Below the pieces are notes generated by a model. That model was not told the DNA's origin, made no database searches, and saw only the letters and a list, made by a program, of their open reading frames with translations. From the NCBI GenBank assembly GCA_950097015.1, contig CATNEN010000010.1, forward strand, positions 1,240,001 through 1,304,000: a stretch of 64,000 bases of DNA, given 5' to 3'. This stretch comes from Macrostomum hystrix (taxonomy: Eukaryota; Animalia; Platyhelminthes). Position 1 is the stretch's first letter; every line of letters starts with the position of its first letter. Both the position numbers and the translations under genes were made by a program. Below are positions 11,609 through 61,300 of the stretch, piece by piece.

Positions 11609-12694
11609 TCAGCTGCCGCATCCTCTGCGGCGTTGGAAGGCCCTCCGAACTCCGCCGCGAATGCCTCGGTTGAAAGCCAGGGTGATGCAGGGCACGGCAG
11701 CGGAGTTCACGTACAGTATGTAGTAGACGCTGATCTCCAGGTGTGCCAGGCCCATGTTGTCCAGGACCATTGGGACCAGACTCAGGAACTGCACCAGATT
11801 GCCTACTATCAGTGCTAGCAGTGGCCTAAGCATTTGCTGCTCACTGGCCTGCTGCTGCTGCTGCTGCTCCTTCTCGCTGCTGTTCGAGGCGCATGGCGCG
11901 GGCGCCGGCCTCCGGGCTCTCTGGCGCCACCGGCCAATCAGCAGAGCCCCGGTGCCCAGGTAGCTAGCCAGCGACACGGCGTAGTTGATGACAGCCAGAA
12001 CCGCCTTCACCAGAGCATTCGTGCCCCGGTGGCTAGTCAGCAGGAGGCAAACCGCTTCGTCGTTGCCACCCAGCTGGGCCAGCCCGACCATCAGCCAGGC
12101 CTGCAGGCCGGCCTCGCCAACGATGGCGATCGCAGCCACGCTGGCGGCCAGGCCGCGAGCCGCCTCCAGACTCCAGCGCCGGCTGAGCGGCGCCGCCACG
12201 GCCAGCAGGCGGTCGAAGGCCAGCAGGCAGTAGGCGTTGACTTCTAGGCCGACTGTCACATCGCGCAGGCTGGTGAGAAACTTCGGCAGCGAGTAGCCGC
12301 GGTTCAGGTAGACATTCTCGTCCTCGGAGGTCCAGCCGGGCCAGACTGGGCTGGAGCCGGAGGTTCTGTTGTGATAGCCGACGCCCAGGTAGAACAGCAT
12401 GAGCACCAGGACACCGCCGGCCAGCAGCTCGTAACTGCTCAGCAACAGCGTCAGGAAGCGGAATGTCCGCCTGGCGCCCGCCTGGAAGCCGCCGCCGACG
12501 GTGACCGCGGCGATGATGAGCGAGTTGCCCAGGATGGCGGACAGGGCCAGGCAGGCATAAATGACGAAGAAGTGCGCGCCAGTGGCAAGTCTAGGCTGGT
12601 ACAGCTCGATGAAGAAGGCGCAGTGATGGCCCTCCTGAACTGTTGCATTGGTGAACTGGGATGTGTTTGTTGTGGTCGCCTCTGTTGTTGTCAT
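11609..12694 (-). CDS. Orphan rhodopsin-class (class A) GPCR, 361 aa, intronless
   Basis: N-terminal sequons NTS/NAT, seven hydrophobic segments, TM1 GNSLII, TM3 end FDRLLAV..P, polyQ third loop, TM7 NSAAVPC. Confidence 0.85.
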   Translation of the reverse strand: MTTTEATTTNTSQFTNATVQEGHHCAFFIELYQPRLATGAHFFVIYACLALSAILGNSLIIAAVTVGGGFQAGARRTFRFLTLLLSSYELLAGGVLVLMLFYLGVGYHNRTSGSSPVWPGWTSEDENVYLNRGYSLPKFLTSLRDVTVGLEVNAYCLLAFDRLLAVAAPLSRRWSLEAARGLAASVAAIAIVGEAGLQAWLMVGLAQLGGNDEAVCLLLTSHRGTNALVKAVLAVINYAVSLASYLGTGALLIGRWRQRARRPAPAPCASNSSEKEQQQQQQASEQQMLRPLLALIVGNLVQFLSLVPMVLDNMGLAHLEISVYYILYVNSAAVPCITLAFNRGIRGGVRRAFQRRRGCGS

Positions 12695-12871: not shown

Positions 12872-13071
12872 GGGAGGTTGTAGCCTTGCGGTTAAAGCAT
12901 CGAACTAACGACTTGAAGGTCGGGGTTCGATTCCTGACTCCACTGGAACAATTTGTGTCCTTTTGCAAGACACTTAACTCTGCATTGCTACAGCTGTTGA
13001 ATGGGTACCAGCATTAGCTGGGGTAATTGAGGGGGTGTGGCGTCCCCCAGTCCGTGGACTGAACAGCTGTA
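12872..13071 (+). mobile_element. tRNA-derived SINE family A with CORE-like domain
   Basis: A box TAGCCTTGCGGTTAA, B box GGTTCGATTCC (12924), then TGTGTCCTTTTGCAAGACACTTAACTC resembling the CORE domain; near-full second copy at 31583..31797. Confidence 0.75.
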
Positions 13072-55300: not shown

Positions 55301-58300
55301 CGGGCGTCACCTGCGGCGCGATTTTTTCAGAGCGCGTGAAAAAGACTTTTCTTTGAACTGGGAAGTTTTACAATGTCACTGTGTCACAATGTCTCTGTGT
55401 CACAATGTCTCTGTGTCACAATGTCTCTGTGTCACAATGTCTCTGTGTCACAATGTCACTGTGTCACAATGTCACTGTGTCACAATGTCACTGTGTCACA
55501 ATGTCACTGTGTCACAATGTCACTGTGTCACAATGTCACTGTGTCACAATGTCACTTTGTCACAATGTCACTATGTCATAATTTCACTGTGTCACAATGT
55601 CACTGTGTCACAATGTCACTGTGTCACAATGTCACTGTGTCACAATGTCACTGTGTCACAATGTCACGTTAATTGTGCCAGAACTAAATTTAGTACGACG
55701 AGTTGCAGGCCAGGATGTCAGGAAAGCTAATGTGCAGAGTTGGGTTCACAGTAAAGCGTGCAGGATTATTTCGGTGGATGCGTACGAGTATGTGCAGTTT
55801 TTACCTGGTGCCCAGCAGACATCTCCACAACAGTGTGTTTGAAGTAAATAACATCGTGTCAGTAAGTATTCAGAGCGGATTCAGAGTTTTAGTTGGAGGA
55901 GTTCCAAGGATTGAAAGAATTCCCAAAAGTGCTGCTGAAGTCTTCTCGAGAGATTTCTTGCTTGTTGATACTCTTGTTTTCCATTTTTTCCATGCAAATA
56001 TAGCTTGGGTGAAGGAAAGCCAACTGTCTACTTCAAGTAGCAGAGAAGTGCACAAACTTGTGAGAATGAAGAGAAAGAAAACAAACTTACGGATCCGGGC
56101 TTGTCCTTGCTGCTCTTGAAGGCCTTCCAATTGTCCACTATGAGGTAGCCGGCGTAAATTTTCCCGACTGTCAGCTTGAACTCGTTCAACTCTAGAGAAT
56201 TTGGGCGAATGCGAATAAAATATTCACCTGGATTGGTCGTGTGACGCATGTGATAAGCTCGTCCACTGCACATAAAAAATTGTATGCAAATACATTTCCG
56301 CAAAAAGATCATTTGGCGACAGTCGAATAGCAACCGGCGAGAAGCCAATCCTGTCAGTAACGTTGGATGAAAATTGTTCGACAAGGCCAAATATACGCTC
56401 GTACCTCTCTCCGCAGCTGCACCCGAACGTGTTAGCTTACCACGGATTCGAACGCCGGGAGGTGGACGCTTTTCCGCTCCACCACTCACCCACATATCTA
56501 TCCAGCCCAATAGCGAAACACTAATCGAAACCCAGTAGTTTTCAAAGTATTTACCGTCGTCCGGTGGCACCAGTTTATTCAGGCACTTCTTTGCCCGCAG
56601 TGGCCACATCTTCTGAATGCTCTGGCGCAGCTCCTCGTTCTTGCGGTCCATCTCTTCCGCGACGGCCATTTTGATGGCTAGCGACTCACGAATCAACGCG
56701 AACAATGTGGTGGTGAAGTGGACCGTGCCATTATCATCCACTGGCATGTTCATTCTGATGAGCTTTCTGTAGGCCAGCTTATTCGGACACTTCTTGCCGA
56801 AGCCGACAGGCGGCTCCATGTTGCGCAGCATTTCGTACATATCTGTGTAGTGAATGCGCCCTGTTGCGGCCGGGTCGAACTCGGCCCACACCCGGCTGTA
56901 CTCGTCCAGGTGATGCGGGCCCAGGATAGACGAGTCCCGAGTCAAGTAGTCGAAGTTGTCCATGATGACGGCCACGAACAGATTGAGCATGAGGAAGTTG
57001 CAGAAGAAGATGAAGGACACGAAGTACATGTACGAGATATTGTTGCCGCAGCTAGCCGTCGCCTCCTCCGACCCCGATGCGGAACCGCTCATTGCACTGG
57101 ACGCTGCTTCCCCTCCCGTGTTGGCGAGAGTCTCGCAGGCCTGGGGGTTTGTACAGGCCAGCATGATTGACTGCCAGGCCTCGCCAGTGGCGCAGCGGAA
57201 TAGCAGCACAAGGCCCTTGTCGAACGACTTGAAGCTGTTGTGCCGGTTGATGTCGCTGTTGTTGTCGATCTTAATGTTGCCGAATACCTGCATGCCAATG
57301 ATGGCGTAGATGAAGAAGAGCATAATGATGAGCAGGCAGACGTAGGGCAGGGCCTTGATGGACTGGATGAAGGTCCACAGCAGGATGCGGATCGTGTAGC
57401 CCTGGCGAAGCAGCTTGATGAGGCGGGCCGCTCGAAACAAGCGCAGGAAGCCGAGATTGGGAAAGTTTTGTTGCTGCGGATGTTGTGGTTTGTTATGGGC
57501 GTTGTTGCCTGGCGAAATGCTTTGACTGTCTCATTGCCCTAATAAATAGTTTTTAGTGCACTAAACCCAATCAACAGTTCACCTGCAGCGCGGAGACCAG
57601 GACATCCGTGATGCTACCGATCACCGTAATGAAGTCGAAGATATTCCAGCGATCCCTGAAGTAGTTCTGAAAGTGATACCGAATTCAAAGCTGCTTAAAA
57701 TGCGACGAATTGAGTTGAATTTTGATCTCTTCTAGTCGTGATTCTTTAATTTTTTCGGCAAAAATTTTATCAGAATCACAACATTGATAGGAAATAGAAA
57801 TTATTCTACACTCATTAGAATATATAAATTTTGCTTTACACATTTAGCTTTTAATACTGCAAATAAACAAGACAAATAGGCATGCGTGAAATAATAAGAC
57901 GAAAAGGTTGGCTCAAAACGACTGAATATTCGGGCCTAATTTCTACTACTCAGTTTCTATGAGTGCTTCTGTAATGGACCCCTACAACAAAAACTACTCG
58001 TAGAAAATAAATTACAACAACTTTGTAAATTTGAGAATTATTTTTACTAGTTTCTATCAAGAAAGTTAACTAAAAACAACAACGTGACAAACTAACGGCT
58101 GTGGAACACCAAAGCGGAAACTGAATGGGACATAGGTTAGGTGAAGCGTTTTACCAATAGATGTACAGAGTGGGAAAGTCAGTTAGGAAGGCGTCTACGT
58201 GAGTTGATGGCTTAAACTAGGTGAAGCAGGAAAATAAAACGCTAGATAAATTCCTAGCAAGTGCATAGCAACTGACTTGAGTATTATCTGAGCTCTACAT

Positions 58301-61300
58301 TTGAGTATTGCATGGTCACACGCCCTGTTCAGGTAGTACCATAGAGTAACCTAAAAAGCCATCACTTGATAAAAGACCGCATTAGTGTCTGCACAATAGG
58401 GACAACATTGTTGCTATGCAGCTTGCTAGCGAATGTGCCTTGTCCAATCGGGATAGCTGCCTGGCTAAACGATTCTGTTCATCACCTTGGGGCCGAAGGC
58501 GAGAATTTTTAGTATGCACTCTACTGAAAACATGACGGTGAAGGCGGAGTTGAGGTACATCAGGGTGCTGCAATAGTGCCGGTAGGACTGGTGCTCCGGG
58601 TCCTCCAGGCCGTCTGGAGTCTGGCTCTCCCGTCTGTAGTACTGCGCGGGAGAAAGTTTTGCGCGAAAGCAGCGGTGCAGTTTTACTATTATTATTGTCA
58701 GGGCCCTCCGTGCATGAAGATTCCCTCACACTTTATGTGAGTTAAATAATGCAAACTGACCAGATCGGCATGCAAATAAATGTGGAAAACTAACCACAAC
58801 TGACAATTGGGGAATTTTGCACTCTACGGACAAAGGGACGCCACCTGGATTCTGAAACCTATCTACTGTTGACTACCGAAAACTTGGGGTATGTCTGATC
58901 CAGTCGTTGCTAGCATATGTTAGTCATGACAATAGCTTCGAAAAATATCCATAATTTGCGGTACGTAAAGCAGCAAGCTTGATATAAATTTACTAGTACT
59001 AATTCGATAGTACCTAGAATCATTGCAGATGCTCCTTGCTTGAACTAGACGTAGCTCAATTTTCGAAGAATTCGACTTCCAAAGTAAGGCTTGAAGCTAT
59101 TCAAAAATGTCACTAGTTCTGTTCCCGTAGAAAAAGGCAGTATGCAAACAATAAATATAGAAGTGGATAAACTAATCAGATACCGCTGATAGACAATGTC
59201 AACGTGCAAATTGTACCGATTCAAACTGCAAATGTGGCACTTAAAACAAAGCAAGCCAAAAATTAGCAAATCGTGCAGCAACTCCATAACCACTTTTGTT
59301 TAAATACGAGCTAGAATGGTTAAATATTTTTTTCCTTTCGGAGCCTGCTGGCCGAGGGGCCATGAGGTCCCTACCCGAATGTCTAATCCGATCATTTTCA
59401 GCAGGCATTCAATTGTGAAAACGATTGTGAACACAGTGTTCAAATTTTTCATTATATCGTTGTACGTGGTGTGGTTTCTGGTCGGGTCGTAGAACTGAAA
59501 TTAACGGAACGACACCAGTTTTTAAGTCAAAGCTCCGCTATCATGCTCCCGAGCTACAGATAATGCTAAAAAGGGTTACATTTTGGACTATCTTAGTGGC
59601 AGACAGCTTACTGTTAGTAGTATGTCGACGGAAAAAATTGTCTTTTTGAAAGGCTTGCGACCTCGAGACCTTAAACAGAACTTCAGCGCGTCACGTAACT
59701 AAGTCACGGCACAGCGATCTTTTGGCTGAAGACGGTGCTCGATTAAAACAGTTAATTATCACAGTTAGGTGAAGCACATTGGGTGCAGGTTGCAAATGTA
59801 CGCGTAAAATATCCCTGCCAAATTGATTGTACTATAATCTAATATGTACGAGCTATTAGACTTTCCGACAGAAAGAAAAGACAAATTAGTCTCTCAAAAA
59901 TCCACCAGGTTGAAATAAATCCAATTATGTTTTCAGCATAAGCACTTGATTACTTAATTCCAACGCAATAGAGTAACCTACCTTCATCATAAGGATAAGT
60001 GTGTTTAGCGCGATCATGACCATGATGAAGTACTCGAACGGCGAGGACACAACTAGGCGCCAGATGCGGTACTTAATCGAGTTTTTATTCTTTGGCATGT
60101 AGCGACATAAAGGCCTGGCGTTTATGGCAAAGTCTATGCACTGCCGCTGGAAAAGAGTAAGGTTAAAAGGGATATTGTTTAGTCACAAGCCCAATCAATT
60201 ATTTTATCATCTGCAAAAAAGCTTTTAACCTGATTCTTATCAATCTCCTGATCTACCAGCTCGTTTTCGCCCTGCTCCTGAAAGGTGATGATGATCAGCG
60301 CGACGAAGATGTTCACGAAGAAGAAGGGGAACACGATGAAAAAGATGACGTAGAAGATAGCCATCTCCTTGCGATAGTCTGGTACCGGGCCCATCTTCAC
60401 GTTTGTGGCGGCCATGGAGTTTTTGAGAACGCTGGAATTGTTTGTTTCGTTTTTGTTGCGTGTACGAGCTATTACTAGCCGTTGTGAACCACTTCGCAGT
60501 AGATTGAAAAAATGCGCTTGTGAACTTACGCAGGCCAGCCTTCTCCGGTAGACACTGTGAACAGAGTTAGCATAGAATTCCCAACGTCATCGTAATGAAA
60601 GTTTTGCTTCTGCCATTGCCGCTCCTTCATTACTGGAATCTGCGAGCTGCCTTCATAGAAAAAGAAGTAGCCGCTGAAAATTTGTACAATGAATGATTTA
60701 CCACGAGCAGTTTAAATTGAGAAATGAGTTGCTTAGTCTAGTTAATGAACCCCTACGTTCATTTTTAGAAAGTGGTTCAGGTTTAGAAAGGGTTGTTCAG
60801 GTTGAGACATGGTGGTTGAGATAAAGACAGCGTGGTTAAGGTAGAGACAGGGTGCTTCAGGTTGAGACCAGACAAGTCCAACCCAAATCAAAAAGAGCAG
60901 ACATGTGACGCACTGGCATTCCCTCTCTGTCTCCTTGGATGCGTCGGTGCAATAGCAGAATTTGCCTTGGAACAGCTGCACCGCAATAACGGCAAATATA
61001 AACTGGAACAGGCAGTACACGATCAAAATGTTGAAGACGTTCTTCAATGAGCTGACCACACAGTTGAATACGGCCTGCGGGATCATTTCATGTACTTGTG
61101 TGTAAAATTGCTGAAAACCTAGCTATGAAAGTGGATTTTGATTTCATACAGAAAGACTTTCATTAGTAAAACCAATCGCACAGTCAATTAACCTTACCTT
61201 CAGCTTCGGTACTCTATTGATGGTCTTTAACGGTCTGAGTACTCGCAGGACGCGAAGGCTTTTGATGGTACTGAAGTTTTTTGCGTTGCCGGGAACAGGA

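Follow-up and report, generated by a model that had tools for sequence, protein, structure and literature searches.

Two adjacent exons of a Cav2-type calcium-channel gene of the flatworm Macrostomum hystrix, here called A and B, each encode the loop between the first two helices of domain IV together with the S2 helix (IVS1-S2 loop and IVS2). The best overall explanation, which we consider likely, is that they are old tandem duplicates of which a single one enters each mRNA, giving two forms of the channel. The A/B pair is probably a member of the old lophotrochozoan Cav2 IVS2 pair described in molluscs. What is new is its presence in Platyhelminthes, where it occurs in two ancient paralogues, and in Annelida, together with an apparent disappearance of the short form from those parasitic flatworms that were examined and a flatworm-specific expansion of the B loop with its Cys residue.

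The exon pair and its gene

The window is the whole 64,000-nucleotide stretch of M. hystrix DNA that was analysed (contig CATNEN010000010.1, positions 1,240,001 to 1,304,000). Within it the gene is represented from IIIS6 to IVS3, its 5' part extending past the window end. The minus strand was read from position 60200 down to 57500 and translated, giving the features presented in Table 1.

Table 1. Exons at the IVS1 to IVS3 region of the M. hystrix Cav2 gene and the intron between exons A and B (positions within the window).
Feature	Position	Strand	Size and phase	Splice sites	Remarks
IVS1 exon	60146-59982	(-)	55 codons	donor GTAGGT	constitutive; end of III-IV linker and IVS1; ends ...LILMMK
Exon A	59494-59375	(-)	120 nt, 40 codons, phase 0-0	acceptor tttcag, donor GTAGGG	ends ...KMIGLDIR
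A-B intron	59374-58642	(-)	733 nt	GT...AG, U2-type	
Exon B	58641-58486	(-)	156 nt, 52 codons, phase 0-0	acceptor cgcgcag, donor GTGATG	ends ...KILAFGPK
IVS3 exon	57666-57583	(-)	28 codons	acceptor tttcag	constitutive; starts NYFRDRW

The IVS1 exon matched residues 1437-1491 of human Cav2.2 with an E value of 1.8e-23 and human Cav2.1 with 1.9e-23, and it matched Cav1 at 1e-13 or weaker. Because this exon matches Cav2.2 and Cav2.1 clearly better than Cav1, the gene is, judged by its IVS1 exon, a Cav2-type presynaptic calcium-channel alpha-1 gene, in agreement with the initial annotation. The closest proteins in the databases carry the name Cav2 or type A alpha-1. Models from Macrostomum lignano, 98% identical in the IVS1 exon, are the nearest.

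All four exons (IVS1, A, B and IVS3) are of phase 0-0. The initial annotation had placed two phase 0-0 exons between the IVS1 and IVS3 exons, and its coordinates proved right against the sequence and its translations. The translations also bore out the complete S2 motif (N..FT..F..EC.LK) that it had ascribed to each of the two, and its description of the loops: exon A, whose residues 7-9 form an NHT sequon, encodes a short S1-S2 loop and S2, and the loop of exon B is 12 residues longer, acidic (net charge -2 vs 0 for A) and without a sequon. In exon B there are 29 residues ahead of the LN of S2, and a Cys in the motif xYCxTL is conserved among flatworms. The two adjacent exons match each other, have equal phase and encode the same structural element, and both A and B matched the S2 region of Cav and Nav channels whose structures have been solved. 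A and B would represent old tandem copies of one exon, which codes for the extracellular IVS1-S2 loop, the S2 helix and the opening residues of the S2-S3 linker.

Conservation of both exons in a second paralogue

The complete genome assembly (220 Mb, 42 contigs) was searched in six frames, which identified a second, ancient Cav2 paralogue on contig C39 (region 19781800-19785000), in which an IVS1 exon, an A-like exon, a B-like exon and an IVS3 exon follow one another in the identical order. Since the same two exons recur there in the same order, the pair in the window (the C10 copy) is not a chance arrangement. The C39 IVS1 exon is 98% identical to the C10 copy. Synonymous sites are saturated between the two genes (pS 0.63-0.92), and a blastn comparison of their introns with 7-base words found nothing alignable outside the exons. 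Four remoter Cav paralogues in the genome each gave a single S2 match at the IVS2 position.

Between the C10 and C39 copies of exon A, pN was 0.159 and pS 0.634 (dN/dS about 0.13) when the final 32 codons were compared, with a nucleotide identity of 77% and non-synonymous changes under-represented (p = 7e-4). The C39 exon A has 37 codons vs 40 in the window, owing to an in-frame three-codon indel at the start of the loop, and 37 codons is also the length found in Cav2 of other animals. For exon B, 48 of the 52 residues are identical (92%), the nucleotide identity is 80%, pN is 0.045 with pS saturated, and non-synonymous changes are again under-represented (p = 4e-12). The corresponding pN values of the constitutive exons are 0.023 (IVS1) and 0.031 (IVS3). 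Splice sites are canonical at all eight ends in the C10 and C39 genes, so that the paralogue comparison found purifying selection together with usable splice sites in both A and B. As the two exons are conserved despite saturated synonymous sites and unalignable introns, A and B are both functional, maintained coding exons, and it is very unlikely that either is a relic or pseudo-exon.

Occurrence in other animals and age of the pair

For the distribution survey, 1.84 billion representative proteins were searched with the IVS1 exon and the residues following ...MMK were inspected. A lone short form, 37 residues long and mostly with a G.R or G.L ending, was found in vertebrates, in nematodes and in models from a periwinkle and Octopus, and exon A is akin in length to the lone IVS2 exon of these vertebrates, nematodes and molluscs. 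Flukes (Paragonimus, Schistosoma), tapeworms (Hymenolepis, Schistocephalus) and monogeneans (Protopolystoma, Cichlidogyrus) had the B-type only, with 52-55 residues, the long loop, xYCxTL and an AFGPK/R ending. In the loci of Paragonimus heterotremus and Schistocephalus solidus no A-type exon was detected by tblastn; the Schistosoma mattheei contig ends too early for this check.

Both exons are contained in two M. lignano models, P0002 (A0A1I8G0I3) and P0152 (A0A1I8J3F4), each exon being one residue off the C39 copy. Among database proteins, exon A was present in M. lignano models only. The initial annotation had raised the possibility that the same pair was already annotated in orthologues, which is true of these UniProt models in that they carry both exons, but the two are co-included there and not given as alternatives. 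We take the models to be annotation errors, since predictors typically join exclusive exons and the product gains an extra helix.

In the annelid Dimorphilus gyrociliatus (L014), a 37-codon A-type exon ending AFGIR is followed after 304 nt by a B-type exon of 41 codons, which begins YY and ends AFGPK, and then by the IVS3 exon; the Cav2 gene of this animal is split into three database models exactly at the A/B pair. The same layout, with a 37-codon A-type and a 42-codon B-type exon, was found on an animal contig (L012), and contigs L011 and L015 contained the short form only. The short, R-ending exon lies upstream and the long, K-ending exon downstream in both Macrostomum genes (C10 and C39), in Dimorphilus and on L012. 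The Cys of the B loop is present in every flatworm B exon and is absent from the annelid B exon. The NHT sequon is confined to the C10 copy, being missing from the C39 exon A, from M. lignano and from the annelid, which weakens the idea of an effect on glycosylation, as envisaged by the initial annotation; a glycosylation switch as a conserved function of the pair was rejected on this ground.

In Aplysia, Crassostrea and Octopus a mutually exclusive Cav2 IVS2 pair has been described (Dunn et al. 2018, PMC5818475, Table 1; Sci Rep 2023, PMC10657410, exons 33a/33b), contrary to the initial annotation, which had located the known pairs elsewhere in these channels. Exons 33a/33b (eDIVS2a/b) of Aplysia californica ApCaV2 are obligate mutually exclusive, and isoform pairs match in Crassostrea gigas and Octopus bimaculoides; their usage in sensory neurons differs from that in the whole nervous system, the exon swap in Aplysia left synaptic depression unchanged, and the authors rated the conservation to "bivalve" level only, i.e. 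within molluscs (PMC5818475, PMC10657410). Like A/B, this pair belongs to Cav2, encodes the IVS1-S2 loop and S2, and occupies the same slot, after the ...LMMK exon and before the NYF(R/H)D exon. The Aplysia forms, 37 aa ending R vs 44 residues with a charged loop ending K, resemble the flatworm short and long forms with their R and K endings, and the shorter exon lies upstream as in the flatworm, an order that is approximate because it was taken from exon sizes in a supplementary table. The Aplysia long form is without the S2 glutamate, whereas flatworm B keeps it, and the flatworm long loop, with its 29 residues before LN and its conserved Cys, exceeds that of Aplysia. A literature search found no published report of the pair in annelids or flatworms.

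A tree was constructed from a 30-column S2 block, and the groups compared in the AU tests were defined only once the tree had been seen. The B-types of Macrostomum, Neodermata, Dimorphilus and L012 formed one group with support of 93/86, and of 98/91 in a second run. A duplication internal to flatworms, with all flatworm A and B exons in one clade, was rejected by the AU test (p = 0.003), and placing the annelid A and B exons together was only marginally disfavoured (p = 0.065). Annelid and flatworm B-types are 70% identical over the S2 block and have the same YY start and AFGPK end. The long form of Aplysia was too diverged to be placed: its branch length was 10, and its grouping with B was neither supported nor rejected by the AU test (p = 0.24). 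The second IVS2 copy in an ostracod model did not group with B. The lineage-specific switch proposed by the initial annotation does not agree with these results, as the same pair is present in the annelid and on L012 and the B-types form one group in the tree.

Within the best explanation, these comparisons imply that the pair is older than the annelid-flatworm split and that A was later lost in parasitic flatworms. The pair is probably older than the mollusc split too, and orthology of the Aplysia long form with B is plausible. We suggest only tentatively, with somewhat less than even confidence, an ancestral lophotrochozoan switch in voltage sensor IV that molluscs, annelids and free-living flatworms have kept for more than half a billion years, with the parasitic flatworms (flukes, tapeworms, monogeneans) retaining B only. 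The flatworm, annelid and mollusc pairs could instead have arisen by independent tandem duplications that converged on a short and a long form, in which case the Macrostomum pair would be lineage-specific. Such independent origins gain some weight from an alignment of just 30 columns, from the unplaceable Aplysia long form (at that branch length and AU value), from the ostracod second copy outside the B group and from an annelid-specific duplication that the AU test did not formally reject. We nevertheless regard them as unlikely, given that annelid and flatworm pairs share order, phase, the YY start, the AFGPK end and the S2-block identity noted above, that the B-types group at 93/86 to 98/91, and that an origin within flatworms was rejected.

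The remaining alternatives concern the use of the two exons. If exon A were an unused relic that had not yet decayed, the channel would always contain B as in flukes and tapeworms, and this agrees with the spliced flatworm proteins recovered outside Macrostomum, all of which run from IVS1 through a B-type to IVS3 with no A, with the Paragonimus and Schistocephalus genomes, which are without an A-type exon, and with word searches that yielded no A-bearing transcript. We consider it very improbable nonetheless. In two paralogues with saturated synonymous sites and unalignable introns, exon A is open, in frame and bordered by canonical splice sites, its non-synonymous changes are under-represented at the p value given above with a nucleotide identity equal to that of the constitutive exons, and it is kept also in M. 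lignano and an annelid. An unused exon would not have lasted so long. Constitutive co-inclusion of A and B would put one more helix into domain IV of the channel and keep the reading frame, and A is joined straight to B in A0A1I8J3F4 and A0A1I8G0I3. This outcome can be considered extremely improbable, because the added transmembrane helix would reverse the orientation of S3-S6 in domain IV, the Cav2 of every other animal carries a single S2 at the IVS2 position, and the equivalent Aplysia exons are used as alternatives (PMC10657410); moreover P0152 also joins both copies of a domain II S3-S4 exon, as is characteristic of ab initio predictions that run across exclusive exons.

Proposed splicing and function

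From the topology, the selection on both exons and the mollusc precedent we infer that each mRNA most likely holds exactly one of A and B. The initial annotation had pointed out that joint inclusion would disturb the channel topology, and this was confirmed: either joint inclusion or skipping of both exons would break the six-helix topology. Because both exons are under purifying selection, their alternative use is the only sensible reading, and A and B very probably form an exclusive pair. The donor GTAGGT of the IVS1 exon would have to be joined to the acceptor of either A or B, and the IVS3 acceptor tttcag would take the donor of either exon. Protein word searches revealed no Macrostomum transcript fragment with an A-to-IVS3 or IVS1-to-B junction. 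Exon A alone gave no candidate, exon B alone gave one genomic fragment from another animal, and the IVS1+A part of the M. lignano protein gave 63 fragments, 0 of them from Macrostomum transcripts.

A number of mechanisms that could enforce such a choice were considered. Steric exclusion was ruled out by the 733 nt of the A-B intron, which measures 971 nt in C39, 304 nt in the annelid and 423 nt in L012. There is no U2/U12 incompatibility, the donors GTAGGT, GTAGGG and GTGATG all being U2-type, and frame-based nonsense-mediated decay cannot police errors as both exons are divisible by 3. No conserved intronic elements were found between the C10 and C39 paralogues, and a search of the A-B intron for docking/selector pairing gave nothing convincing, only short AT-rich inverted repeats. 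Trans-acting splicing factors are the default guess and a possible means of regulating A and B, by analogy with PTB, which is reported to act on Cav1.2 exons 8/8a (PMC3060452).

The S2 gating residues, which interact with the charges of S4 and comprise the outer Asn, the charge-transfer-centre Phe, the counter-charge Glu and the Lys, are kept in both A and B, and for this reason the switch is not expected to disable the sensor. Two changes would be introduced by it. With A the outer loop would be short and neutral, whereas with B it would gain 12 residues, an acidic charge and a Cys; and the cytoplasmic end of S2, where the S2-S3 linker starts, would read GLDIR with A vs AFGPK with B. The pair might thereby act as a modulatory switch, the two channel forms differing in the kinetics or voltage dependence of voltage-sensor IV (activation, inactivation) or in binding at the outer face, and by analogy with the Aplysia pair they may be used in a cell-type-specific manner, probably by different neurons.

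Exclusive exons that replace part of a voltage-sensing domain are also known from the Cav2 gene of Drosophila, cacophony, where the swap between IS4A and IS4B shifts the voltage of activation and determines localisation to the presynapse (Bell et al. 2025, PMC11828482). The fly gene has two exclusive pairs only, IS4 and I-II (PMC11828482). In cacophony the swap affects S4 of domain I, the charge carrier itself, while the flatworm pair affects S2 of domain IV, a position at which the fly has no such pair. Vertebrate Cav1.2 exons 21/22 (IIIS2) and 31/32 (IVS3) are likewise exclusive pairs that each replace one voltage-sensor helix, in this case of another high-voltage-activated calcium channel, and aberrant co-inclusion of 21 and 22 is reported to give a defective channel (PMC5059693). 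Unlike the flatworm pair, those of Cav1.2 belong to Cav1, involve other helices, derive from vertebrate-specific duplications and show no extended difference in an extracellular loop.

The A/B pair does not represent a new principle; it is probably an old and functionally important route to two presynaptic channel types from one gene. If the ancestral switch tentatively suggested above is true, the Cav2 channels of all parasitic flatworms would expose an extracellular loop unlike the canonical short one, which vertebrate Cav2 has, and this structural difference, common to the parasites, might be of interest to pharmacology. An exclusive pair at this site would also explain two annotation errors, the extra helix in the M. 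lignano proteins and the Dimorphilus gene that is divided among three models.

Tandem IVS2 exons in public gene models

Both of the tandem exons for the domain IV S1-S2 loop and S2 helix (IVS2) were present in a public gene model of Macrostomum lignano (UniRef A0A1I8J3F4), in which the domain II S3-S4 segment likewise occurred twice in tandem, and the channel encoded by this model is therefore topologically impossible. A second M. lignano model, A0A1I8G0I3, was of the same kind. The Cav2 gene of the annelid Dimorphilus gyrociliatus was split into three annotated genes on contig CAJFCJ010000019.1 (locus L014). The middle model terminated directly after ...MMK, so that both IVS2 exons and the IVS3 exon were left without annotation. 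Coordinates of these features and of those in the M. hystrix genes are presented in the table.

Features of the Cav2 genes of M. hystrix and D. gyrociliatus
Feature	Location	Position	Strand	Remark
Cav2 gene models, three	L014	1940-6198, 8001-12439, 16315-20195		
IVS2 exons, both	L014	~12532-12642 and ~12947-13069		unannotated
IVS3 exon	L014	14505-14588		unannotated
GT-AG intron, 83 nt	window	60147-60229	minus	very short; between IVS1 exon and upstream exon
ttccgttaat	window	59501-59510	minus	just upstream of exon A acceptor
Ancient second Cav2 gene	G000:C39	19782995-19784887 (L008 2496-4388)		same A/B exon pair as the window's gene

IVS2 segments in the mollusc and the ostracod

In the long IVS2 variant of Aplysia the glutamate of the ..EC.. 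motif, conserved in all other S2 versions, is replaced by Gly-Leu-Gly-Phe (PMC5818475, supplement). The counter-charge is therefore lost through the switch in the mollusc, whereas no such loss accompanies the switch in the flatworm or the annelid. Two tandem IVS2 segments were also observed in a Cav2 model of the ostracod crustacean Cyprideis torosa (CAD7224407.1), one ending in AFGVR and the other in AFGFK, and the second of these fell outside the lophotrochozoan B-type (long-loop) group. Judged from the protein model, the ostracod exon may have been duplicated independently, or the two segments may be a further exclusive pair, so far unrecognised, in this arthropod.

The M. hystrix paralogue and the introns around the exon pair

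Synonymous divergence between the ancient second Cav2 gene of M. hystrix and the window's Cav2 gene was saturated, and exon A of the former comprised 37 codons with no sequon. Because the 83-nt intron is very short, the alignment between the paralogues extended beyond the boundary of the IVS1 exon; the upstream exon across this intron has the end ...EIDKNQ. The ttccgttaat motif is similar to the consensus for a U12 branch site but is one base longer. A U12 reading of the intron before exon A was not adopted, since its donor, GTAGGT, is U2-type. Window positions 57370-57407 are located a short distance downstream of the IVS3 exon and close to the next conserved exon.
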